64,000 bases of DNA. Origin: Mobula hypostoma. Taxonomy: Eukaryota. The stretch's first letter is position 1. Each line of letters opens with the position of its first letter. Made by a program: the position numbers and the translations under genes. This document shows positions 34,987 through 64,000 of the stretch, piece after piece. The notes under the pieces were generated by a model that was not told where the DNA came from, did not search any database, and worked only from the letters and a program-made list of their open reading frames with translations. Location of the stretch: positions 28,086,001 through 28,150,000 of the forward strand of contig NC_086124.1 of the NCBI RefSeq assembly GCF_963921235.1, written 5' to 3'.

Positions 34987-35267
34987 GGAAGACAGTCGAC
35001 TGCTACACAGCTCTGTGGTTCTCAGAAACGGGCCTGCGATTTGGTTACGATGGCAAAGACATCACCTATTTTGATTTCCCTGTCAGGAAATTTGTGGCCA
35101 GTATTCCACTGTTGGAAGACTTTATCAGTGGTCTGAACCACCTCAAACCCTGTCTTTGAAGTCACCCGTACCAAGGAAGTTCTGATCCTGAATGCCAAGC
35201 TGTCTACATCATTAACATCATGGAAGTTATGTTGAACTTGGAACAGAGCCAACTCTACAAATGCAAG
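34987..35267 (+). pseudogene. MHC groove-type (alpha1/beta1-like) exon with a premature stop; possible W-category gene
   Basis: Acceptor ctcatcag|GG. Reads GKTVDCYTALWFSETGLRFGYDGKDITYFDFPVRKFVASIPLLEDFISGLNH; TGA at 35157, then ..YIINIMEVMLNL. Homologous to exon 49013-49270 (KFVA.P, LNH, NIM..VM). Confidence 0.7.
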
Positions 35268-46839: not shown

Positions 46840-47400
46840 TCATCTGGCATACCCCCATCCACTACCCACCTGTCTACCATCCAAACACCTGCTATCCCTT
46901 CTGACCTGGTAGCCCCCTTCCACACAACCACCCCCCCCCAGACACAAACACTATCCTTATCACCTGGTATATTCCTTCTATCACCCACCTTATTGCTGAA
47001 CTGATATTCCATCCACCCACCTTCTCCCTCACCTGCTTTCACCCCATTCCACCTCCTTTCTCACCTGGCATCCCACCCACCCACCAACTTCCCCCCAGTT
47101 GGTATCCCACCCAAACACCTACCTCCTCCCTCACTTGGTATCCCACCCACACACCTACCTCCCCCTCACCTGGTGTCCCACCCACCCATTTCCCCCTCAC
47201 CTGGTATTCCACCTATCTTCCCCCTTACCTGGTACCTTACCCACACACCTACCTCCCCCTCACCTGGTGTTCCACTCACACACCTACCTCCCCCTCACCT
47301 GGTATCTCACCCACATACCTACTTCCCCCTCACCTGGTGTCCCACTCACACACCTACCTCCCCCTCACCTGTTATTTCCCGACCCCATCCACGCTCCTCT
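46840..47400. repeat. C-rich degenerate minisatellite (about 36-bp unit)
   Basis: Recurring cacctacctccccctcacctggtatcccacccac. Confidence 0.8.
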
Positions 47401-47449
47401 CAGCTGGTATCCCAATCACCTTTCGTCTAGTGTTGTTGAGTCTCATTGA

Positions 47450-47830
47450 GAATAAAGCGCCATGTGGAAACAGAGGCGTTCCCTCCCGCCTCGCCCCGCC
47501 TGTCTGTGGCAGCGGCCGCCCACTCAACCGGGGAAACTTCTACATCGATCGCCTCCCGTTACGGGACCTGCCGGCTGGCGATCGGTTTCGCGCGTCGAGG
47601 CTGTGTGACAAGGTCCTCAGCCTTCGGCGAAAGGGATGTGGGGAATGATGCCGTCTCCGCGAACCGTGAGCCAGCTGCTCCTCCCGCTGTCTCAGGAGCC
47701 GCCGGCCGGCGTGAGGCGACGCCGCTCTCCCTCTCTGCTCGCCGCCTTCCTCCTCCTCCTCAACGGCTCCACTGCCCTGGGTGAGGAGCGCAGCGCAGCA
47801 GGGATGGGAGGGGGCACCGATGGAGCGTAG
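47450..47830 (+). promoter_or_regulatory. CpG-island-like promoter region of the MHC-family gene
   Basis: Dense CpG and high GC versus the CpG-poor surroundings; GC-box-like ccccgcc; spans the leader exon. Confidence 0.6.
47645..47780 (+). CDS. MHC class II-architecture gene (candidate W-category beta), exon 1: leader
   Basis: MMPSPRTVSQLLLPLSQEPPAGVRRRRSPSLLAAFLLLLNGSTAL-G|gtgagg: basic n-region, hydrophobic core, phase-1 donor. Confidence 0.75.
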
Positions 47831-48790
47831 GGAGGTAGAGGGGGGTCGGGACACTGAGGGAGGGTGGGCAAGAGAGGGAAGAGGGCAACCAGGGAGGGAG
47901 GGTAAAGGTCTCAAGGGAAGGGGAGACCTCGCTGAAGGAAGGTGGAGAGAGTAGCACCAAGGGAGGGTGGGGAGGAGAACTGAGGGAGAGTTAAGAGGGG
48001 AGAGGAGGGGAATGAGTACCGATGGAGGGTGGGGAGGAGAGGGGAGTGACATTGAGGCAGGGTGGGGAGTGAGCACCAAAGGAGGGTGGAGAGCTGAGGG
48101 GAAGGGTGCCAATGGAGGGTGGGGAGGGGGTGCCAAGGGAAGGTGGGGAGGAGCGGGTTCCAATGGAGGGTAGTGGAGTGGGCACCATGGGATGGGAGGG
48201 AGTTCCAAAGGAGAGGAGAGAGGGCAGCGAATGGGCATAGGAAGGGAAGGAGGCACAGAGAGAGAACAGGTAGAGAGGGAGTGAAGGTGAATTGAGTATT
48301 GTTGAGGGGTTGGCGGAAGGGGAGGGGATATTGGGGATGGGTGTGTGGGAACGGAAATAGGGTGCCAAAGGTGTGTGGGGAGGGAGAGGGGTGCTAAGGG
48401 TGGGACTGAAGGCTGAGGAGTGGAGTTGTTGGGGTGCAGAGAGTGGGGAGGATAGAGGGCACGGAGATTAGGAGGAGAGGGGGCCATGGGTGAGTGGGTG
48501 GGGAGGGACTGCCAAAGATGTTTGGGGAGGGAAGTAGTCACTGAGGGTGGGTAGGGAGAGAGGGGGTGGGTGGAGAGTTGGGTGTGGACAGTGAGGAGAG
48601 ATGTCTGTGGGGAGAGGTGTTGAGGGAAGGGCACTTCAGTGGCGAGGAGGGGTTTGGGCGAAGAGGTGGGTGAGGACGTGGGCATCGAACTGAGGAAGAG
48701 GTGGGTGGGGACGTGGGCATCGAACTGAGGAAGAGGTGGGTGGGGATGTGGGCATCGAGCTGAGGAAGAGGTGGGTGCCAAGAGTGAGGG
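47790..48790. repeat. G/purine-rich low-complexity tract in intron 1, including an about 36-bp repeat x3
   Basis: Runs of GGG/GAGG; gaggaagaggtgggtggggacgtgggcatcgaact repeated at about 48655-48777. Confidence 0.85.
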
Positions 48791-49012
48791 TGAAGGGTCA
48801 GCAGTACCAACACCAAATCCCAGCTATTGGAGTTTTACGGTGGGAGGGAGAGGTGGCTCTGGAGGAGTGGCACCTGTTGCCGTCAGAATGGTGAGGTATC
48901 CACAGAAGGGAGAGACAAATTTGTTCTTTCAGGTTGATTAATTTTAAGGTTTTAAAATGAACCATTTCACTCTCACAAATGGCTAACGGATTGATTATTA
49001 TTCGCTTGCCAG

Positions 49013-49270
49013 GAATGCACATCGGTCAAGTGATTTTCTCTGCTAAAGGTTCGGAGTTATCAACGGCTACCATGCAGTTTGCTTACAATGGCGAAGCGGC
49101 TGTTTGCTATAATTATACAACAGGAAAGTTTGTGGCCATCAATCCAATTGCAAAGCCTTACACGGACAAACTGAACCACAAAACAGAGGGTACCAAATAT
49201 GTTACCTACTCTGTTAATATCATGCCTTTTGTCATGGAGATAGTTCAACTGGTTGTTCAAGCTCTGGCTG
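49013..49270 (+). CDS. Exon 2: groove-type beta1 / class I alpha2-like domain (86 codons)
   Basis: ttgccag|GA ATG..GCT G|gtaagt, phase 1-1. GMHIGQ..MQFAYNGEAAVCYNYTTGKFVAINPIAKPYTDKLNH..; canonical Cys pair absent; one NYT sequon. Confidence 0.85.
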
Positions 49271-49291
49271 GTAAGTTTATTTTCACAAAAA

Positions 49292-49560
49292 AAATCTGCA
49301 GATGCTGGAAATCCAAGCAGCACACACGAAGTGCTGGAGGAGCTCAGCAGGCCAGGCAGCATCTATGGAAAAGAGTAGAGACGACGTTTCGGGCTGAGAC
49401 CGTTCATCAGGACTGGAGAAACAAGTTGAGGAGTCAGAGTTAGGAGGTGGAGAGGGGTGAAGTAAGGAGCTGGGGAGTTGTTTGGGAAAAGATGTGCAGG
49501 GCTGGAGAAGGAGGAATCTGATAGGAGAGGACAGAAGGGCATGGAAGAAAGAAAGGGGGG
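49292..49560 (-). mobile_element. PLE tail in intron 2 with partly decayed hammerhead (49378-49415)
   Basis: Minus strand CAGTC-CTGATGA-ACGGTCTCAGCCC-GAAA-CGTC-GTCTC. Confidence 0.65.
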
Positions 49561-49691
49561 AAGCACCATTGTATTATTATTGTATAATGTACACATGCTT
49601 TAATAATAAACATACTTTGAAATTCTGTTACTCTTTACTTTTTCTGATCCTGTAACCAAGTTCAGCTTCAATGTGTTTCTGTCCACTGCAG

Positions 49692-49973
49692 CGAAGCCGA
49701 CTATCACAATAACCTCAAGACACATGAAGAACAGAGAGAATACCTTGGCCCTGACATGCCAAGTGTATGGATTTTATCCCAAGAAAATCCACGCAACGTG
49801 GCTGCGGAATGGAGTGGCGATCGATCAGGAAGTGCTAATGATGAGAATTTTACCCAACCGGGATGGGACGTTCCAAGTTAGCCTACAAGTCGAAATTGAC
49901 CCCGGGAAGGGTGACACTTACACTTGTGAAATCGAGCATTTGAGCGTCCCTGACAAACTACATGCGGTTTGGG
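49692..49973 (+). CDS. Exon 3: Ig C1 domain with class I alpha3-type motifs (94 codons)
   Basis: ctgcag|CG AAG..TGG G|gtaaga. LTCQVYGFYPKKIHATWLRNG..ILPNRDGTFQ..GDTYTCEIEHLS. Confidence 0.92.
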
Positions 49974-50772
49974 GTAAGACTCAGAGTCTGAATAATTTGG
50001 GGTCCAGTGTACTGCTGACGATCTGGTTCACACTCTGTCCAAAACTATATTATATACTCAGTGGCCACTTTATTGGGCACCTCCTCTACATAATAACACA
50101 GTCACAGTCATGGTCTTATGCTGCTGTAGCTCATCCACTTCAGTGTTCGAAATGTTTGTGTTCAGTGATGCTCTTCTGCACACTAACATTGTAACAGTCG
50201 GTTCTTTGAGTTAGTATCGTGTTCTTGTTAGCTGGAACCAGTCTGGCCATTCTCCTCTGAAATCTCACTAACAAGGCATTTTTGCCCACAACTGCCACTC
50301 AGTAGATGATTTTTTTTGTTTGTTTATCACACTGTTCACTTTAAACTCTCGAGACTTGTACCTGAAAATCCCGGGAGCTCAACAATTTCTGAGATACTCA
50401 AACCACCCTGTCGTGCATCAGAAATCGTTCAAAGGTTCATTTATTATCAAACTATGTATTCAGTATCAACTCTGAGATTCATTTCTCCAGATAGCCAGGA
50501 AAAAAAGAAATCTGTGGAAGTCATTCAAAGATAAACATCAAACCCCCACCCCTCCACTGCACAAAAAAGAAATCAAAATGCCACAAGAACATCAAAAAAA
50601 ACTAACAAAAACATCAAGGCCTAAACCCCCTCCCCCGCGCAAAAAACTAACAAAACATGCTATGCAATAACAAGGTGAAAGAACAGGGGAAAACATAGAA
50701 TATAAAAATCATAAGACTGGAAGTCCATAGTCCAATCCATAAATTCAGAACCTTGGTAATGTCCTCTGACCA

Positions 50773-50776
<4 letters not shown>

Positions 50777-50818
<42 letters not shown>
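50777..50818. repeat. (GA)n microsatellite
   Basis: Direct reading. Confidence 0.95.
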
Positions 50819-50819
<1 letters not shown>

Positions 50820-50973
50820 ACTCAAGCACAGAGGCCTACCGTCCAACAACAGTGAGTGAAAGGCACCACACAAACTCCTCTGACAGCAGAGAAGTCCATC
50901 CCTGCAATCAAAAGGCAAGCAGTTGCCTCAGATTCAATCTTCCTCGACACTTTACTCGGCAAATGGAGTCGAT

Positions 50974-52608
50974 CATTGGCCCCTGCCTTATCTTTAAGCT
51001 GCTTCGCCCTGAGGCTGTTTGAGCTTCCTGGAATCTTCCCGGAGACAGCAAAGCACTAGATCACTCAATTGATCTCCAAAATGTAAATCACATGCTCTTA
51101 ACAGTTCCAGAAACACATTTAAGATGAAAAGCAGACGTAAAAGAAGTGAAATAAACGGATTCATTGACTATCTGATAGACGTTGACCAGCGGGACGTTGT
51201 ACACAGGCACCATCTTGACTAGATTCCATGGTGAAAGTCACTCAGATCACATTTCTTCTCCAATCTGATGTTTGGTCTGAACAACAACTGGACCTCTTGG
51301 CCATGTCTGCATGCTTTGATGCATTGAGTTGCTGCCACATGATTGGGTGATTTGGTTCACATTTTCAACCCATTCAGGTTACGATTGTTTCACAGGAACA
51401 GAATCCTGCCGTAATCTGGTGAGGACTAGTATCTCCCCTTTCTACATCAGTCATGGAGTAATACAGATATGTGCACTTCTGTCCAAGTGGACCATGCTGA
51501 TCACCATAAGATCATAAATTATAGGAGCAGAATTAGTCAATTTGGCCTATTGAATCTGCTTTGGCAATTCATGGCTAATTTATTATCCACTCAACCCCGT
51601 ATTTCTGCCTTCTCCCCGTAACCTTTGACACCCTTAATAATCAAGAAGCTTTCAACTTCATCTTTAAATCTACCCAGTGACGTGGCCTCCAGAGCAGTCT
51701 GTGGCAATGAATTCAGGGACTTACCTAAAGAAATTCCTTCTCATCTCTGTTCTAAAGGGATGGTCCTTCTATTCTGAGGCTGTGTCCTCTGGTGCTCGAC
51801 TCCCCCATGAGAGGAAACATCCTCTCCACGTCCACTCTGTCTAGGCTTTTCAGTATTTGATAGTATTGAATGAAACTTACACCCCCACCCCCCGCCCCCA
51901 TTATTCTTCTAAACTCCACCAAGTACAGGCCCAGAGCCATCAAATTCTCATCATATGTTAACCCTTGCATTGTCAGGATCATTCTCGTTATCCTCATTCG
52001 GACCCTCTCCAATACTCAAACTGCTTAAGACCAATCTCTTATGAAGCCTCAGCATAAAAGAACGGTAACACTGCACTTGCCTTCCTTACTCCTGACTCCA
52101 CCTGCAAATTAACCTTTAGGGAATCCTGTTCGAGGACCTCCAATTCCCTTTGCACCTCGGATTTGTGTTTTCTCTTGGTTAATACTTTCCTTCCTGGGAT
52201 CATTCTCATGAACCTCCTCTGGGCCCTCTCTAATTCCGGTACATCCTTTCTGAGATAAGAGGCCCAAAACTGCTCATAATACTTCAAGTGCGGATTTGAT
52301 CAATGCCTAATGAGGCCCGGCAATAGATTCCTGCTTTCATATTTGAGTCCATAGGAAAAGAATGCTGACATTGCATTTGCCTCCCTTACCATTGATTCAA
52401 CGACAAATTAACATTTAGGGAATCCTCCATGAGTTCTCCCAAGTACTTGCTTTTGTTCTACCTTGTATATATGGAATGATGGTTTGGATATCATGCTCAC
52501 AAATACTTTTTACTCTACCTCGATGTATCATAATAAGCCAATTAGCACACTTCTGACCTCAGTGGATACAAGCCCAGCATGTCTGACCGTTTCTCATAAG
52601 ACAACCGG
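50974..52608. repeat. Left arm of an inverted segmental duplication (intron 3 of the MHC-family gene); contains a CR1 3' fragment at about 51530-52440 (-)
   Basis: Colinear reverse complement of 62366-64000 across several unrelated TE junctions. Confidence 0.9.
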
Positions 52609-52814
52609 CACATTCCAGCAGTCTAACTGGCATGTAGCATAACACTTTAACTGCCAGTGACCTGGGTTCAAACCCAGCACATCCTTCTTCGATAAGGGGC
52701 CATTCTCTGTTGTTGTATTGGACCAAGACTAGAGAAGTCTGGTGAAGACAATAAAATGCGAACAACTGCAGCCAAACTGCTCTCTGCTGTAATATCTTCT
52801 GCCTATTTATGGCC

Positions 52815-55650
52815 GAACCATAGAACCATAGAAACTACAGCACAGAAACAGGCCTTGTGGCCCTTCTTGGCTGTGCCGAACCATTTTCTGCCTAGTCCCA
52901 CTGACCTGCACACGGACCATATCCCTCCATACACCTCCCATCCATGTATCTGTCCAATTTATTCTTAAATGTTAAAAAAGAACCCGCATTTACCACCTCG
53001 TCTGGCAGCTCATTCCATACTCCCACCACTCTCTGTGTAAAGAAGCCCCACCTAATGTTCCCTTTAAACTTTCCACCCCTCACCCTTAACCCATGTCCTC
53101 TGGTTTTTTTCTCCCCTTGCCTCAGTGGAAAAAGCCTGCTTGCATTCACTCTATCTATACCCGTCATAATTTTATATACCTCTATCAAATCTCCCCTCAT
53201 TCTTCAACGCTCCAGGGAATAAAGTCCTAACCTATTCGACCTTTCTCTGTAACTGAGTTTCTCAAGTCCCGGCAACAACCTTGTAAACTTTCTCTGTACC
53301 CTTTCAACCTTATTTATATCCTTCCTGTAATTTGGTGACCAAAACTGAACACAATACTCCAGATTCGGCCTCACCAATGCCTTATACAACCTCATCATAA
53401 CATTCCAGCTCTTATACTCAATACTTCAATTAATAAAGGCCAATGTACCAAAAGCTCTCTTTACGACCCTACCTACCTGTGATGCCACTTTTAGGGAATT
53501 TTGTATCTGTATTCCCAGATCCCTCTGTTCCACTGCACTCCTCAGTGCCTTACCATTAACCCTGTATGTTCTACCTTGGTTTGTCCTTCCAACATGCAAT
53601 ACCTCACACTTGTCTGCATTAAACTCCATCTGCCATTTTTCAGCCCATTTTTCCAGCTGGTCCAAGTCCCTCTGCAGGCTCTGAAAACCTTCCTCGCTGT
53701 CTACTACACCTCCAATCTTTGTATCATCAGCAAATTTGCTGATCCAATTTACCACATTATCATCCAGATCATTGATATAGATGACAAATAACAATGGACC
53801 CAGCACTAATCCCTGTGGCACACCACTAGTCACAGGCCTCCACTCTGAGAAGCAATTCTCTACTACCACTCTTTAGCTTCTTCCATTGAGCCAATGTCTA
53901 ATCCAATTTACCACCTCTCCATGTATACCTAGCAACTGAATTTTCCTAACTAACCTCCCACGCGGGACCTTGTCAAAGGCCTTCCTGAAGTCCATGTAGA
54001 CAATATCCACTGCCTTACCTTCATCCACTTTCCTGGTAACCTCCTCGAAAAACTCCAATAGATTGGTCAAACATGACCTGCCACGCACAAAGCCATGTTG
54101 ACTCTCCCTAATAAGTCCCTGTCTATCCAAATGCTTGTAGATTATGTCTCTTAGTACTCCCTCCAATAACTTACCTACTACCGACGTTAAACTTACCGGC
54201 CTATAATTTCCCGGATTACTTTTTGATCCTTTTTTAAACAACGGAACAACATGAGCCACTCTCCAATCCTCCAGCACCTCACCTGTAGACAGCGACATTT
54301 TAAATATTTCTGCCAGGGCCCCCGCAATTTCAACACCAGTCTCCTTCAAGGTCCGAGGGAACACCCTGTCAGGTCCTGGGGATTTATCCACTTTAATTTT
54401 CCTCAAGACAGCAAGGACCTCCTCCTTTTCGATCTGTACAGTTTCCATGATCTCACTACTTGTTTCCCCTAATTCCATAGACTTCATGCCAGTTTCCTTA
54501 GTAAATACAGATGCCAAAAAACCTATTTAAGATCTCCCCCATTTCCTTTGGTTCTGCACATAGGCGACCACTCTGACCTTCAAGAGGACCAATTTTATCC
54601 CTTACAATCCTTTTGCTCTTAATATACCTGTAAAAGCTCTTTGGATTATCCTTCACTTTGACTGCCAATGCAACCTTATGTCTTCTTTTAGCCCTCCTGA
54701 TTACTTTCTTAATTATTTTCTTGCATTTCTTGTACTCCTCAAGCACCTTATTTACTCCCTGCTTCCTATACATGTCATACAACTCCCTCTTCTTCTTTAT
54801 CAGAGTTGCAATATCCCTTGAGAACCAAGGTTCCTTATTCCTATTCACTTTGCCTTTAATCCTGACAGGAACATACAAATTCTGCACTCTCAAAATTTCT
54901 CCTTTGAAGGCTTCCCACCTACCGATCACATCCTTGCCAGGGAACAACCTGTCCCAATCCACACTTTTTAGATCCTTTCTCATTTCTTCAAATTTGGCCT
55001 TCTTCCAGTTAAGAACCTCAACCCTAGGATCAGATCTATCCTTGTCCATGATCAAGTTGAAACTAATGGTGTTATGATCACTGGAACCAAAATGCTCCCC
55101 TACACAGACTTCCGTCACTTGTCCTAACTCGCTTCCTAACAGGAGATCCAATATTGCATCCCCTCTAGTTGGTCCCTCTATATATTGATTTAGAAAACTT
55201 TCCTGAACACATTTTACAAACTCTAAACCATCTGGACCCCTAACAGTATGGGAGTCACAATCAATATATGGAAAATTAAAATCCCCTCCCACCACAACTT
55301 TATGTTTCCTGCAGTTGCCTGCTATCTCTCTGCAGATTTGCTCTTCCAATTCTCATTGACTATTGGGTGGTCTGTAATACAATCCCACTAATGTGGCCAT
55401 ACCTTTCCTGTTTCTTAGCTCCACCCATAAGGACTCAGTAGACAAGCCCTCTAATCTGTCCTGCCTGAGCACTGCTGTAATATTTTCCCTAACAAGCAAT
55501 GCTACTCCCCAACCTTTCATTCCTCTGCCTCGATCACATCTGAAACATCGGAACCGTGGAATATTAAGCTGCCAGTCCTGCCCCTCCTGTAGCCAAGTTT
55601 CACTAATTGCTATAATGTCATAATTCCACATGTCAACCCACGCCCTCAAC
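52815..55650 (-). mobile_element. CR1 LINE ORF2 (endonuclease to 3' tail), 5'-truncated and frameshifted, in intron 3
   Basis: IIAISETWL..GGDFNFP..AILDLLLG; PGNYRPVSLTSVVGKLLE; YMDFRKAFDKVP; GVPQGLVLGPLLF..KFADDTK; tail gaaccatagaaccatagaa. Confidence 0.92.
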
Positions 55651-55757
55651 AGAGAACGCCAAACTGTTCTCTGCTCTTGTATCTTCTGACCAACAGCTGT
55701 GGCCAAACTGCTGTCTGCCATAATATGTTCTGACCACAGTTTTACTGATTTTCCTAG

Positions 55758-55859
55758 TTCCCAAGAATATCTATCCAGTCTATGGATATGTGATTGGAAT
55801 AATCGCTGGAATAATTGGCATTCTGACTGCAGTGTCCGGAGGAATGATCAGGTGGAAAG
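55758..55859 (+). CDS. Exon 4: connecting peptide plus transmembrane segment
   Basis: ttttcctag|TT CCC..AAA G|gtagga, phase 1-1, in frame with exon 3. (V)PKNIYPVYGYVIGIIAGIIGILTAVSGGMIRWK: class II-like Gly-patterned TM with a basic stop-transfer residue. Confidence 0.85.
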
Positions 55860-56479
55860 GTAGGAATATTTTTGTATGTAATCATCAGTCCAGGGAACAT
55901 TTTTTTCTTCATACTTTTCATTTTTAAAAAAGCCACAGATACCCAGTTGGCCCAATACCCAGTCTGGTCATCGGAGACCCAGTGATTCAGCATGGGTTAT
56001 CACACCAAACTTCTACACGAAGAGTGATAGAATATAAGGGCAGGCCAGAGAGCAAGAAACAATTCAAGATGGAAACAAATCACTGGTTTACACTGACCAT
56101 CAAATATCCATTTAGATTTTTCCAATGTTGTTCTTCCAACATTCCCATTAGCTCCAAATAAACTCCACCCCCCCACACACACACACACACCTACACGCTA
56201 GAGACATTCCCATCAGCTCCCAACACTCAACTAATCTGATAGGAGAGGAGAGTGGATCTTGGGAGAAAGGGAAGGTGGAGGGACACCATAGGGAGGCGCT
56301 GGACAGTAAGGAGAAGTGAAGGGGTAATGGGTATTCCGAATGGGGAATGGATAAAGATAAGATGGGAAGGGGAGAGAAATTACCAGAAGTTAGAGAAATC
56401 GATGCTACTCACCGTCATCTGCCAGCATGTATTCCTTTCCCTCCTCACGCTTTACTCTTACTTCTGTCCCCTTCCAATC

Positions 56480-56517
56480 CAGTCCTGACGAAGGTTCTTG
56501 ACCTGAAACATTGACTG
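56480..56517 (+). ncRNA. Hammerhead motif, CpG-decayed at stem III and the cleavage site
   Basis: CAGTC-CTGACGA-AGGT TCTTG ACCT-GAAA-CATT-GACTG: stems I and II pair perfectly, but CGTC has become CATT. Confidence 0.55.
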
Positions 56518-58012
56518 TTTATTCCCTTCCATCTTTGCTGCCTCACCTGCTGAGTTCCTCCTGCATTTTGTGTGTTGCTGTGGATTTTCCAGCATCTGCA
56601 GAACCCCTTGTGTTTATCAAATGTCCGATGGTGCAGATTCCTGGTGAGGGAGGAAAAGTGGACGGAGAGTTGTGAGGAGAACTGTTCTGCACAGAGCGGT
56701 CAGTACCTGGGGTACCAGAGGAGGTGGTGGAACCAGATAAGAAAGCAATGTTTAAGACCATTTTGGCAGACGAGTGAACAGGCAAGAAGTGGAGCCATTA
56801 TACCCTCAGTGGCCGCTTTATTAAGGGTGCATGAGGAACATAATAAAGTTTATGTTCATGGTCTGCTACTGCAGCCCATCAATTTCAAAGTTTGACATGT
56901 TGTGTGTTCAGAGATGCTCTTCTGCACACCACTATTATAACGTGTGGTTATTTGAGTTAGTGTTGCCTTCCTGTCAGCTTGAACCAGTCTGGCCATTCTC
57001 CTCTGACCTCTCTCATTAACAAATTGTTTTCACCCTCAGAACTGCCGCCCCACTTTTGTTCCTCGCACCATTGTCTGTAAACTCTAGAGACTGTTGTATG
57101 TGAAAATCCCTGGAGAGCAGCAGTTACTGTGATAATCAAACCGCCCCATCTGGCACCAACAATCATTCCACAGTCAAAGTCACTTAGATCGTGTTTCTTC
57201 CCCTCTCTGATGCTCGGTCTGAACAACAAATGTACCTCTTGACTATGCCTGTATGCATTGAGTTTCTGCCACATGATTGGCTGATTAGATGTTTCTATTA
57301 ATATTAAACCTGTTTCTGATCTGCACTAACCTGTAGCTAATTAACCTCACAATGTAACTTTTGATATTTCGGCCATCAGTATTTCCATTTCACTGAAACT
57401 TTGGATTACCAACTGTTTTTGGAACCCTCATATGACCTGGGAGTGTCTGAAAGAACTGTTCTCCTGGTCAGTGGCAAATGACCAGAGGACAGTTTCGAAA
57501 CACAGAAGATTCTGCAGTTGGTGGAAATCCAGAGCAACGCACACAGTCACATACACACAATGCTGCAAGAATTCAGTAGGTCAGGCAGCGTCTATGGAGG
57601 GGAATAAACAGTTGACATTTCGGGCCAAGACCAGTCATTAAGTCTAAAGGAGACATTTTGTGTAGTCAGCACCACTCAGGCCCCAAAGGTGTGGATTAAA
57701 GAGTTTTAACCTTCAGAGATCGGACGTAAGACATCGGAGTACAATTAGGCCACTCAGCCCATCAGATCTGCTCCACTGGATGTTATTTTTGTCCTTGATT
57801 CGTTCTCTGTAAACTCTAGGAACTGTTGTCCGTGAAAATCCCAGGAGATCAGCAGTTCCTTCTCTATTCAAACCACCCCACCTGGTCTGTGGTCAGAGTT
57901 ACTTGGATCATATTTCTTCCCCATTCTGATGTTTGGACTGAACAACAACTGAACTTCTTGACCACATTTGCATGCTTTTATGCTTGAAGTTGCCACATGA
58001 TTGGCTGATTAA

Positions 58013-59852
58013 TAATCATAATACCTAAATATCTCAAGGAGTTTGAAACTTTAAAAGGAGTATAAAGGAAACAATTCACTTTTACTAAAATTAATATAAG
58101 GATCTTTATAAAGCTAATTTTGATCCCTTAGTAGACTCTATGAAGTATTTATTTAGTAGATGGAGTTGACTTACATTTTCACTTGTTGGTCGTATTCATA
58201 TAGTTAAAATGATGATTCTACTGAAATTTTTATATTTATTTCAGAATATTCCTGTTTTTTTGACTAGGAAGTTTTTTGATCGGATTGATTCTATTATTTT
58301 ATCTTTTATTTGGAATAATAAAAGACCAAGAATTAGTAAATGTCATTTACAAAAATTGAAAAAGTATGGAGAGCTTGCTTTGCCTAATTTTAGAATGTAT
58401 TATTGGGCTGTTAATCTCCGATATATGTCTTTTTGGTTATATTGGGTTGATAAGAGTGATCGGTCAATTTGGGTAGACCTGGACCTAAAAGTTGTAAAAC
58501 AGTTTTATTTAACCTCGTTATTGGGGGCTCCTTTACCTATGCAATTACGTAAAGTTGTTAATTTAAACCTATATCCTGTGATTAAGTATTCTTTACAAAT
58601 TTGGTGCCAGTTCCGCAATTTTTTTAATCTTATAAAATTTAAACTTTGTGGTTTAATTTACCGAAATTACTTTTTTAAGCCTTCTTTGAGTGATCCAATT
58701 TTTCTACTTTGGAAAAATAAAGGTATTAATTCTTTTTTAGATTTATTTAAAGAAGATAGATTAACAATTAATTGATAAATATTCTCTTTCATACTCACAC
58801 TTTCTGCAATACCTTCAAGTTAGACATTTTTTACAAAAATATTTAAGTACTTTCCCTTACATATTTGAGGCTGACCTGTTAGATACTATTATGAGTATGA
58901 ATCCTTTGATTAAGGGTTCTATTGGAAGAAATTATAATTTATTATTACAATGGGATAAGCGTCCTTTGTCTTAGATTAAACAGGATTGGGAAAAGGAACT
59001 TAATTTGACTTTTATGACGGAGGATTGGATGCGGCTATTGAAGTCGGTTAACTTTTCTTCAATTTGTGCTAGCCATTCATTGATTCAATTTAAAATTGTA
59101 CATCGTTATCATTTGACAAAGGAGAGACTTTGTAAAATCTTTTCTAATGTTGATAGTCGTTGTGATAGATGTAAAACTGAGATAGCTACACTAACACATA
59201 TGTTTTGGTCTTGTTCTATATTAGAACAGTTCTGGAAGTTGGTTTTCTCAACAATTACTAAAGCAATTAAAATTAATTTACAACCTAATAAATTAACTGT
59301 GCTTTTTAGAATAGATCCTCAAAATATTCATGGTATTTCTGTGTCTGACCAACATGTTATTGCATTTGTTACATTGATAGCTAGGGGGGCCATTTTGTTG
59401 AAGTGGAAGGATACATCAGCTCCCACTTTGTCGCAATGGTTCTCTCAGGTGATGCTATGTCTTAGTTTGGAGAAAATTAGAAGTCGAACCTTTGAACCTT
59501 TATTTGACTTTGAGAAAAGATGGGGCTCATTTGCTCGTTATTATCATTTGAGTTAAGTGATATAATTTTTCCACGATCTAATTGTAAATTTTTTTAGTAT
59601 ATTTTCTTGCTGACGGTTTGATGTTTATTTTAGAAGCATTTTGTATGATGCATGGCTCCGGGGTTGTACACTTAATAGGTTCTCTTTTTTTTTGACTTTT
59701 CTGCTCAGTAGGTTTTTTTTTGTTATCACAAAATTTTGTTTTCAATCTTTAAGATGGGGTTTTTTTTCTGAGGCATTGTAAGTGTTGTTACTTCGATGTA
59801 CTCATGTTATTTTTCCTATATATACAATAAAAAGATTTGAAAAGAAAGAAAG
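58013..59852 (+). mobile_element. 5'-truncated L1-clade LINE with 17-bp TSD, inserted in a Tc1-like element
   Basis: FLYLFQNIP..FIWNNKRPRI..LALPNF; QFKIVHR..CDRC..THMFWSC..KIR; aataaa plus A-rich tail. catgattggctgattaa at 57996-58012 and 59853-59869. Confidence 0.9.
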
Positions 59853-60535
59853 CATGATTGGCTGATTAAATATTTGGATTAACAAGCAGGTGTACAGGTG
59901 TATCTAATAAAGTGGCCACTGAGTGAAGACTAACGGGAGATCGTGTAATTTGGTATCATGATTAGTACAAATGTGGGCGGAATGGCCTGTTTCTGAGCTG
60001 TACTTTTCTTTGTTTCTAAAACATACCTTTATTCATTCAAATTATAGGCAGGAAATACGATATGGTTGGTAGATGTCTCTTTCTAAATTGATCGTGTCAT
60101 CAAATCAGTATCTTGATCGTGTCTTCCATGCTGTGCATACTATTTACATGTGGCCTCTTCTGAGCAGTGTATCCACCAAAGTCAGAGTAAATTAGTAATT
60201 TTAATTACACCTTGTTAAAATTAAAGTTCAGTAAGGGCATCAACGATCATGGGGAGAAGGCAGGAGAATGGGTTTGAGATGAATAATAAACCAGCTGCAA
60301 TGAAATGGCCAGCACAGACTCAATAGGCCAAATGCCCTAATTCTGCTGCTATGCCTTGTGATTTAAATATAGCATCCAAGTACATATATGCCACCAAATA
60401 TTGCCTTGAGATTCATCTTCTTCCGGGCATTTACTGGAAAATAATTACAATCAAACTTATGAAACCTATACATAATCAAAAACTAATCAACAACCAATGT
60501 GCAAAAGAAGACTAATTGTGCAAATAAAAACATAC

Positions 60536-60900
60536 AGTGACATGCAAAAGTTTGGGCACCCCGGTCAAAATTTCTGTTACTGTGAGTAGTTAAGTGAGTA
60601 GAAGATGAACTAATCTCCAAAAGTCATAAAGTTAAAAATGAAACATTCTTTTCAACATTTTAAGCAAGATCAGCGTATTATTTTTGTTTTGTAGAATTTC
60701 AGAGTGGAGAAAAAGAAAGGAGCACCATGCAAAAGTTTGGGCACCCCAAGAGATTTGAGCTGTCAGATAACTTTTCCCAAGGTCTCAGACCTTAATTAGC
60801 TTCTTAGGGCTATGGCTTGTTCACAATCATCGTTAGGAAAGGCCAGATGATACAAATTTCAAAGCTTTATAAATACCCTGACTCCTCAAACTTGTCCCAA
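60536..60900 (+). mobile_element. Left end of an IR/DR-type Tc1 DNA transposon
   Basis: TA|CAGT start; direct repeat catgcaaaagtttgggcacccc at about 60541 and about 60726; TATA-like tataaata. Confidence 0.75.
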
Positions 60901-60904
60901 AAAG

Positions 60905-61790
60905 TGTGAGAATGTTATGAGAAGTATTGCTGGATGCGACTGTAGAGCAGGGCGGGAAACTATGTACTTAATGTATCTAGCTATGATTCGATCAGTTCTG
61001 GATTACGGTTGTATTGCTTATGGTTCCCGCTGCTACGGCAGTGCTTGGAAAACTAGACACTGCAGTGCAAAGCACTTAGACTCTGTTGTGGAGCTTTTAG
61101 AACAACATCAGTCCCGGCATTATGTATGGAGATGGGAGAACTGCCTGTGCATTCAAGACAAATTCAGTTGGGCCTGCAGTATTGGGTAAAACTAAATGGA
61201 TTCAATCACTGCTGTTCATCAAAGTGTCTTTTGCAGGGGAAGTCAGAGTGCCAAAGTAAAAGTAAAAGATACCCATTTTTAGATTTGGTTACTAACTGGG
61301 CTGTGAAATTGAAGCTGACTGAGGAAGACATCGTTGACCAAATCTTCTTGCCACCCGTCCCTTTTTGGCTCTATCCAGAACCAGAAGTAGACATAATCCT
61401 CCTTTTTCAGCTTCAAGGAAGCAGTGCAATTTCATCAGCGTTGATCACAAATGTATATTTAAATAATAAATGGGGATCTTATCTGAAGATTTTTACTGAT
61501 GGCTCAGTGGACCCAGAGAGCAGTAGGGCAGAATTTGGGATGTATGTGTTTCAACTTGGAGTTAAGATTAGTCACCGGGTTTCAGATGGTGTTTCTTGCT
61601 TTGCAACAGAATTATTAGCAATCCTCTGGGCCTTATGGTGGATAGAAGACTCTCAACCATGCAGGGTTATCATCTGTTTGGATTCTGCTGCTGCTTTATA
61701 GTCTATAAAAGGGAGTAAATCAAAAGCTCGATCTGACATAGTTATTGTGATTCTCTTAGTGCTGTTTAGAGCAGGGAAGATGGGTCGCAT
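60905..61790 (+). mobile_element. I/Nimb-type LINE fragment encoding an RNase H domain
   Basis: YLAMIRSVLDYGCIAYGS; LKIFTDGS..S.FATELLAILWAL..VIICLDSAAAL. Confidence 0.7.
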
Positions 61791-62165: not shown

Positions 62166-62365
62166 NNNNNNNNNNNNNNNNNNNNNNNNNNNNNNNNNNN
62201 NNNNNNNNNNNNNNNNNNNNNNNNNNNNNNNNNNNNNNNNNNNNNNNNNNNNNNNNNNNNNNNNNNNNNNNNNNNNNNNNNNNNNNNNNNNNNNNNNNNN
62301 NNNNNNNNNNNNNNNNNNNNNNNNNNNNNNNNNNNNNNNNNNNNNNNNNNNNNNNNNNNNNNNNN
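62166..62365. other. Assembly gap (200 N)
   Basis: Direct reading. Confidence 1.
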
Positions 62366-64000
62366 CCGGTTGTCTTATGAGAAAGGGTCAGACAGGCTGG
62401 GCTTGTATCCACTGAGGTCAGAAATGTCCTAATTGGCTTATTACAATACACCGAGGGAGAGTAAAAAGTATTTGTGAGCATGATATCCAAACCATCATTC
62501 CATATATACAAGGTAGTACAAAAGCAAGTACTTGGGAGAACTCGTGGAGGGTTCCCTAAATGTTAATTTGTCAGTTGAATCAATGGTAAGGGAGGCAAAT
62601 GCAATGTCAGCATTCTTTTCCTATGGACTCAAATATGAAAGCAGGAATCTATTGCCGGGCCTCATTAGGCATTGATCAAATCCGCACTTGAAGTATTATG
62701 AGCAGTTTTGGGCCTCTTATCTAAGAAAGGATATACCGGAATTAGAGAAGGCCCAGAGGAGGTTCATGAGAATGATCCCAGGAAGGAAAGTATTAACCAA
62801 GAGAAAACACAAATCCGAGGTGCAAAGGGAATTGGAGGTCCTCGAACAGGATTCTCTAAAGGTTAATTTGCAGGTGGAGTCAGGAGTAAGGAAGGCAAGT
62901 GCAGTGTTACCGTTCTTTTATGCTGAGGCTTCATAAGAGATTGGTCTTAAGCAGTTTGAGTATTGGAGAGGGTCCGAATGAGGATAACGAGAATGATCCT
63001 GACAATGCAAGGGTTAACATATGATGAGAATTTGATGGCTCTGGGCCTGTACTTGGTGGAGTTTAGCAGAATGATGGGGGTGGGGGATGAGGGTGTATGT
63101 ATCATTCAATCCTATCAAATACTGAAACGCCTAGACAGAGTGGACGTGGAGAGGATGTTTCCTCTCATGGGGGAGTCGAGCACCAGAGGACACAGCCTCA
63201 GAATAGAAGGACATCCTTTTAGAACAGAGATGAGAAGGAATTTCTTTAGGTAAGTCCCTGAATTCATTGCCACAGACTGCTCTGGAGGCCACGTCACTGG
63301 GTAGATTTAAAGATGAAGTTGAAAGCTTCTTCATCATTAAGGGTGTCAAAGGTTACGGGGAGAAGGCAGAAATACGGGGTTGAGTGGATAATAAATTAGC
63401 CATGAAATGCCTAAGCAGGTTCAATAGGCCAAATGGACTAATTCTGCTCCTATAATTTATGATCTTATGGTGATCAGCATGGTCCACTTGGACAGAAGTG
63501 CACATATCTGTATTACTCCATGACTGATGTAGAAAGGAGAGATACTAGTCCTCACCAGGTTACAGCAGGATTCTGTTCCTGTGAAACAATCGCAACCTGA
63601 ATGGGTTGAAAATGTGATCCAAATCACCCAATCATGTGGCAGCAACTCAATTCATCAAAGCATGCAGACATGGCCAAGAGGTCCAGTTGTTGTTCAGACC
63701 AAACATCAGATTGGGGAAGAAATGTGATCTGAGTGACTTTCACCATGGAATCTAGTCAAGATGGTGCCTGTGTACAACGTCCCGCTGGTCAACGTCTATG
63801 AGATAGTCAATGAATCTGTTTATTTCACTTCTTTTACGTCTGCTTTTCATCTGAAATGTGTTTCTGGAACTGTTAAGAGCCTGTGATTTACAGTTTGGAG
63901 ATCAATTGAGTGATCTAGTGCTTTGCTGTCTCCAGGAAGATTCCAGGAAGCTCAAACAGCCTCAGGGCGAAGCAGCTTAAAGGTAAGGCAGGGGCCAATG
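62366..64000. repeat. Right arm of the inverted segmental duplication (runs off the window end)
   Basis: Position 62366 pairs with 52608 and 64000 pairs with 50974; both arms are 1635 bp, with scattered substitutions. Confidence 0.9.

Follow-up and report, generated by a model that had tools for sequence, protein, structure and literature searches.

A probable W-category MHC beta-chain gene of the DS1-like lineage, transcribed and spliced, in the ray Mobula hypostoma

Introduction

The 64 kb stretch of contig NC_086124.1 (assembly GCA_963921235.1) of the lesser devil ray, Mobula hypostoma, analyzed here (the window; all positions below are window coordinates) carries a four-exon gene of the major histocompatibility complex (MHC) on its plus strand, a relic exon upstream of it and, downstream, an assembly gap followed by intron sequence of a second, convergent copy. 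We propose, with a probability of about 0.85, that the four-exon gene, called the window gene below, is transcribed, encodes a W-category MHC beta chain (WB) of the DS1-like lineage and is one of several WB copies in a cluster of at least 280 kb. The W-category is an ancient MHC family, first described in 2021, that has a class II shape with class I-type contact residues (PMC8713811). Our literature search found no publications on the MHC of Mobula.

Results

A first-pass annotation of the window, made from the sequence alone, had joined four phase-1 exons with canonical splice sites (47645-47780, 49013-49270, 49692-49973 and 55758-55859) into 259 stop-free codons. These coordinates were confirmed, with AG/GT at every internal border and phase 1 throughout, and the start was moved to the ATG at 47636, 9 bases 5' of 47645 (MWGMMPSP..., as in every annotated homologue), which extends the joined exons to 262 codons (Table 1). 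All 262 residues of the spliced product were identical to those of a Mobula hypostoma RefSeq protein, XP_062890833.1, which carries the name 'class II histocompatibility antigen, B-L beta chain-like' and whose gene length of 9445 bp corresponds to 47636-57080. The leader encoded by exon 1 was 100% identical to the leaders of both XP_062890833.1 and XP_062891132.1. Because RNA contigs extend 5' of exon 1 to about 47512, we assign the sequence between that point and exon 1 to the 5' untranslated region. Upstream of exon 1, the interval 46900-47400 is a long low-complexity tract, a C/T-rich cacctggtatcccaccc tandem array, and reading 46900-47520 by eye for a promoter S-X-Y module revealed just CCAAT and weak X-like strings.

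The exons encode, in order, a leader, one groove domain, one C1-set immunoglobulin (Ig) domain and one glycine-patterned transmembrane (TM) segment, as the first-pass annotation had read them, and this order was borne out by Pfam, by the RNA joints described below and by an AlphaFold2 (AF2) model. The groove domain of exon 2 has one unpaired Cys and no intradomain disulfide, and its Pfam matches were weak: 22.4 bits for MHC_II_beta (cut-off 20.9) and 14.7 bits for the alpha2 half of MHC_I, with the full protein at 19.5 bits for MHC_II_beta, under the cut-off. Against the sequences of the PDB, exon 2 gave a weak alignment with chicken class II beta. Exon 3 matched the Pfam C1-set domain with an E-value of 8e-18, and its best PDB sequence matches were class I alpha3 and MR1. 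The glycine pattern of the TM helix in exon 4 (G-YVI-G-IIA-G-II-G) consists of GxxxG motifs of the class II beta type; a single GxxxG in the TM segment has been reported for WB (PMC13399432). The AF2 model (predicted local distance difference test score 73) pairs four strands with a long helix and continues with an Ig domain and a TM helix, and the best whole-chain Foldseek matches to it were class II beta chains including HLA-DR beta (about 190 columns, E-value 1e-14).

Table 1. Coordinates of the window gene and of other features in the window
Feature	Position	Strand	Description
Exon 1	47636-47780	+	Start codon and long leader; RRRR in the n-region, hydrophobic core LLAAFLLLL
Intron 1	47781-49012	+	1232 nt; low-complexity, rich in purines, with short tandem repeats
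Exon 2	49013-49270	+	Single membrane-distal beta1 groove domain; Q6, A32, G35, NYT sequon
Exon 3	49692-49973	+	beta2 C1-set Ig-like domain; LPNRDGTFQ = P57 and G61, without W61
Intron 3	49974-55757	+	5784 nt; contains inverted-repeat arm 50974-52608 and retrotransposon remnant 53426-55718
Exon 4	55758-55859	+	Connecting peptide and TM helix; GxxxGxxxGxxG, ends ...IRWK, then GT donor
RefSeq terminal coding exon	57039-57080	+	13 codons ELPPHFCSSHHCL, then stop; inside a dispersed repeat
Relic WB beta1-like exon	35019-35246	+	In-frame stop, ...LRFGYDGKDITYFDF...; tblastn E-value 8e-8, 43% identity to Pristis WB-like protein
Assembly gap	62166-62365		200 N; between the window gene and its tail-to-tail neighbour, 6.3 kb downstream
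Second inverted-repeat arm	62366-64000	-	95-98% complementary to 50974-52608 (1.6 kb); intron 3 of the convergent WB copy

Four runs from one study (X1 to X4) contain the gene, and only contigs with 0 mismatches to the window copy were taken as gene-specific. Such contigs cross the joint 47780|49013 in X1 and X2 and the joint 49270|49692 in X1. A 648-nt X1 contig aligns, with 0 mismatches, by its record positions 522-648 to 49847-49973 and by its positions 420-522 to 55757-55859, and a 160-nt X2 contig has the same arrangement of exons 3 and 4, again with 0 mismatches. Because the record coordinates are contiguous in both contigs, the transcripts run straight from exon 3 into the TM exon (49973|55758). 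Intron 1 has an RNA depth of about 0 and is bridged by GT..AG joints in X1, X2 and X3. Exon 2, which differs by about 10% (in the alignable part) from the P0004-type paralogue, is covered with 0 mismatches in X1 and X2, and the same two runs match exon 4 with 0 mismatches. The mismatched exon 4 contigs of X3 and X4 change ACT to ATT (T to I), which gives the TM residue of the P0004/P0160 paralogues. A 746-nt X3 contig over exons 1-3 was considered as an allele of the window gene and rejected; it was not counted for the window copy because its differences translate to the beta1 domain of a P0004-type paralogue. The window gene is transcribed and spliced: all three introns are confirmed, and the leader is spliced straight to the sole groove exon.

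A long G/A-rich low-complexity tract occupies 47800-48800 of intron 1, with three copies of a unit of about 38 nt near 48650-48780. Intron 2 holds a short dispersed repeat (49283-49590) over which RNA contigs reach a depth of 10^4 and show many loose ends, an abundant transcribed family and possibly a short interspersed nuclear element. The first-pass annotation had placed the TM exon about 5.8 kb away beyond a 'CR1 insertion', which agrees with the length of intron 3; the insertion is the minus-strand remnant of a non-long-terminal-repeat (non-LTR) retrotransposon, with endonuclease and reverse transcriptase matches.

A full-library phmmer search was run with the Ig exon; its best single-Ig-domain matches were chains 236-293 aa long, each with one groove domain, and came from Mobula, Hemitrygon, Hypanus, Pristis, skates and sharks. 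WB sequences, including a partial skate WB_DS1-like gene, are printed in the supplement of Okamura et al. (2021 PNAS; PMC8713811), and three proteins of our set could be tied to published WB_DS1-like sequences of great white shark, cloudy catshark and little skate (P0155, P0178 and P0169, respectively). P0178 lies on a catshark contig of 159,043 bp, which fits the supplementary label 'cloudy catshark WB_DS1-like_159K', and the start of the P0169 beta2 domain is identical to that of 'little skate WB DS1 like 01'. In a two-domain maximum-likelihood tree of groove plus Ig domain (42 rows, 192 columns), the window gene formed one clade with ray, skate and shark proteins including P0155, P0178 and P0169 (98/99). 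Tetrapod class II beta chains formed a separate clade (98/97), and class I alpha2-alpha3 was sister to the WB clade (92/85). The Ig-only tree was consistent with this topology at lower resolution. Three predictions with two Ig domains (P0085, P0113 and P0135) were omitted from both trees, and the fragments P0126, P0120, P0093 and P0153, together with P0176, which has a very long branch, from the two-domain tree. P0086 and P0103, labelled class I in the two-domain tree, are mislabelled two-Ig predictions with an Ig rather than a groove domain upstream and should be disregarded. The window gene is an orthologue of the published WB_DS1-like sequences in this clade, and the WB-type identity that the first-pass annotation had suggested is supported; among the tetrapod references, the protein clusters neither with class II beta nor with class I chains.

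The signature residues were compared in an alignment of 21 sequences (A1: the window gene and 20 relatives), in which the numbering of the published work was matched by eye from the FAY.G motif rather than taken from Dataset S1 of that paper. Q54, A72, G75 and P189 were invariant in 21/21 sequences and G193 (P0163) nearly so; in the paper's numbering they are equivalent to Q6, A32, G35, P57 and G61. Q6, A32, G35, D37, P57 and G61 are given as common to WB and class I; the WB beta2 domain lacks the Trp61 that is invariant in class II beta2 and mostly has Gly61, and its Pro57 contacts Tyr8 of WA alpha2 or of beta2-microglobulin (PMC8713811). The class I-type residues noticed in the first pass (P..DG in place of the class II beta2 NGDW, and G.H..Q and FAYNG in domain 1) are thus real and conserved across the family. 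All 20 relatives in A1 have a single groove domain. Published work defines a WB chain by this combination of class II architecture with class I-type residues, as found in the window gene.

The 3' end of the gene is less simple. The relatives in A1, from sharks to rays, have a conserved tail exon at the C-terminus of the ELCSHGE...ECTTEA type, and the first-pass annotation had identified no cytoplasmic or stop exon. This stands for the conserved tail exon, which is absent from the window; it does not stand for the RefSeq model, which uses the 13-codon terminal exon (Table 1). The repeat around that exon is one that we take to be Tc1/mariner-like, and RNA depths over it reach the thousands, which is the pattern of a dispersed repeat. 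No joint from 55859 to 57039 was listed among the RNA joints. A gene-specific X1 contig continues for at least 419 nt past the TM exon, with no further piece of it within 55860-61690, and the RNA depth at 57300-57499 is 0; the gene-specific contigs therefore do not end in the repeat exon. The RefSeq terminal exon is probably a minor or artefactual 3' end. The 200-N assembly gap sits exactly at the breakpoint of the inverted homology between the two arms. Most simply and economically, both convergent genes probably have their tail exons in the unassembled gap. Between the TM exon and the gap, 59005-61698 on the plus strand is another remnant of a non-LTR retrotransposon, with a zf-RVT and a weak RNase H match.

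The RefSeq gene coordinates place the exons of the convergent WB copy past the end of the window, within a larger gene model. The RefSeq gene of XP_062891129-32 spans 279 kb, with the window gene antisense within it, and its 'isoforms' are two different leader-beta1-beta2 cassettes on one block of TM and tail exons; in this model, TM and tail exons of another copy are linked to the first three exons of the convergent copy over a distance of 279 kb. This model probably arose as an annotation error, through the near-identity of the copies and the presence of the gap. By RefSeq coordinates, at least four WB-type genes or cassettes lie within about 280 kb, together with an SRCR/C1-set gene. The relic exon upstream of the window gene (Table 1), which has no Ig exon beside it, is a decayed additional copy in the same orientation as the window gene. 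Among the Mobula copies, the helix half of beta1 (residues 93-135 of P0163) is 49-65% identical, and the leader, beta2 and TM segments are 88-100% identical.

Discussion

In this work, we have described a gene of Mobula hypostoma that shares with the WB_DS1/WB_DS1-like lineage of banded houndshark, great white shark, cloudy catshark and little skate (Okamura et al. 2021) the exon layout of leader, beta1, beta2 and TM segment. With WB_DS1-like chains it has in common Q6, A32, G35, P57 and G61, the FNYTT sequon, the GxxxG pattern of the TM segment and the lack of a beta1 cysteine pair. Sequence identity to the great white shark and basking shark proteins is 55% in beta2 and 29-31% in beta1, and identity to skate proteins is 62% in beta2. 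Unlike the WB_DS1-like chains, the window gene has a long leader with RRRR that is specific to myliobatiforms, an Ala for D37 and one unpaired Cys in beta1; it has no adjacent WA_DS10-like partner in the window, and its canonical tail exon is unassembled. The Mobula genome also differs in having several paralogous copies, and these have diverged much more in the beta1 helix half than elsewhere.

Several observations weigh against the assignment of the window gene to the WB, DS1-like lineage as a transcribed member of a cluster. The four runs are coded and marked 'RNA?', without a library record, and may include DNA, so that the evidence for transcription is the spliced joints. The weakest point of the tree is its reference set, made up of tetrapod class I chains and of tetrapod class II beta and alpha chains only. 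At the position of D37, with A1 numbered by eye, the window gene has Ala and the other DS1-like proteins have Glu or Val. A search of six-frame fragments of the 64 kb window with an Ig-domain hidden Markov model built in this work, and with the YxCxVxH pattern, found no WA-type or other C1-set exon, only exon 3, so the window shows no head-to-head WA/WB pair like the one described in sharks. The conserved tail exon was also not found by whole-window tblastn with the tails of P0004, P0003 and P0009; with the only annotated stop exon derived from a repeat, the copy might be a tail-less partial duplicate.

This last point leads to the alternative that deserves the most attention, namely that the gene is of WB type and the copy itself is a partial inverted duplicate, lacking the canonical cytoplasmic exon and ending in the exonised repeat ELPPHFCSSHHCL, either as a tail variant or in decay, and would not be a fully functional WB gene. 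Consistent with it, the RefSeq end at 57039-57080 is inside a dispersed repeat, no part of the window holds the conserved tail, the gene sits within an inverted duplication whose arms are 95-98% alike and is antisense to the 279-kb RefSeq model, and the second WB_DS1 locus of the banded houndshark may be a pseudogene (PMC8713811). However, copy-specific contigs run at least 419 nt past the TM exon into sequence outside 55860-61690, with no RNA depth at 57300-57499, exons 1-4 are intact, and the scaffold gap 6.3 kb downstream falls exactly where the inverted homology breaks off. We consider a tail-variant or decaying copy rather unlikely.

The RefSeq name would make the product a divergent conventional class II beta chain with a class II alpha chain as its partner, which appears highly improbable. 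Like conventional class II beta chains (HLA-DRB, chicken BLB and shark DAB), the window gene combines a groove half-domain, a C1-set domain and a TM segment with a glycine motif, is built of phase-1 exons and finds its best whole-chain structural matches, HLA-DR beta among them, in this group; its MHC_II_beta scores of 19.5-22.4 bits are near the Pfam cut-off of 20.9. Unlike them, it has Gly in place of the invariant Trp61 of beta2 and carries P57, it lacks the Cys15-Cys79 disulfide of beta1, where Trp61 is also replaced by Leu, and the best sequence matches of its Ig domain are class I alpha3. In the tree it stands apart from the class II beta clade (98/97) and within the published WB clade (98/99). 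Class I heavy chains (classical, MR1 and CD1) resemble the window gene in their alpha2-alpha3 part: its Ig domain is closest to alpha3 and MR1 and has P..DG, the beginning of beta1 and FAY.G recall alpha2, exon 2 has a weak match to the alpha2 half of Pfam MHC_I, and class I forms the sister clade (92/85). A class I heavy chain with a missed or upstream alpha1 exon is nevertheless refuted for the sampled transcripts and almost certainly wrong. The RNA connects the leader directly to exon 2, and therefore no alpha1 or other upstream groove exon is used and the three-domain class I alternative fails for these transcripts; the sequence of intron 1 contains no groove-type exon or open reading frame, and a single groove domain is found in all 20 relatives of A1. 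Also unlike class I heavy chains, the window gene lacks the alpha2 disulfide and has a class II beta-type TM helix.

If the window gene is a WB gene, it would encode a type I membrane glycoprotein in which a leader is followed by a single groove half-domain (beta1), a C1-set Ig domain (beta2) and a TM helix of glycine-zipper type. Judging from the known WA/WB pairs, this chain would be expected to pair with a WA chain, presumably of the WA_DS10-like type, which is the partner of WB_DS1-like in great white shark (PMC8713811). The predicted heterodimer would be class II-shaped, with its interdomain contacts made by class I-type residues. Surface expression would require both chains, as suggested by the mutual dependence of recombinant WA and WB chains of the tiger salamander for surface expression (PMC8713811). 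WA pairing, surface expression and a ligand function are what we would infer for the Mobula product. In the alignment with PDB sequences, Trp61 of the class II beta1 domain, a peptide-anchoring residue, corresponds to Leu in the window gene. Because this Trp61 is replaced and the beta1 disulfide is missing, the molecule is, judged by its sequence, most likely non-classical.

It may be that the Mobula W locus is an expanded and diversifying set of leader-beta1-beta2 cassettes in both orientations and, in an extreme form suggested by the RefSeq joining of two cassettes to one 3' block across 279 kb, that cassettes share distant TM and tail exons. We regard this as a speculative and improbable scenario. 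If it is true, the divergence of the beta1 helix half, which presumably faces the ligand, would suggest that ligand diversity has been selected for in a family that has been described as non-polymorphic.

The novelty of the gene was overstated in the first-pass annotation, as the W-category, including the skate WB_DS1-like gene, was published in 2021 and a RefSeq model for the gene exists; the window gene is an addition from a new species to a family known since then, not a new gene type. Automatic annotation labels such WB genes 'class II beta-like', and they are therefore easily overlooked. The finding is of use mainly for correcting this automatic name and as an entry to a multi-copy W locus of rays, and it leaves the picture of 2021 unchanged. 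For comparative immunologists, the transcribed, multi-copy WB cluster of this well-assembled ray genome provides additional sequences and a locus in which to study the family.

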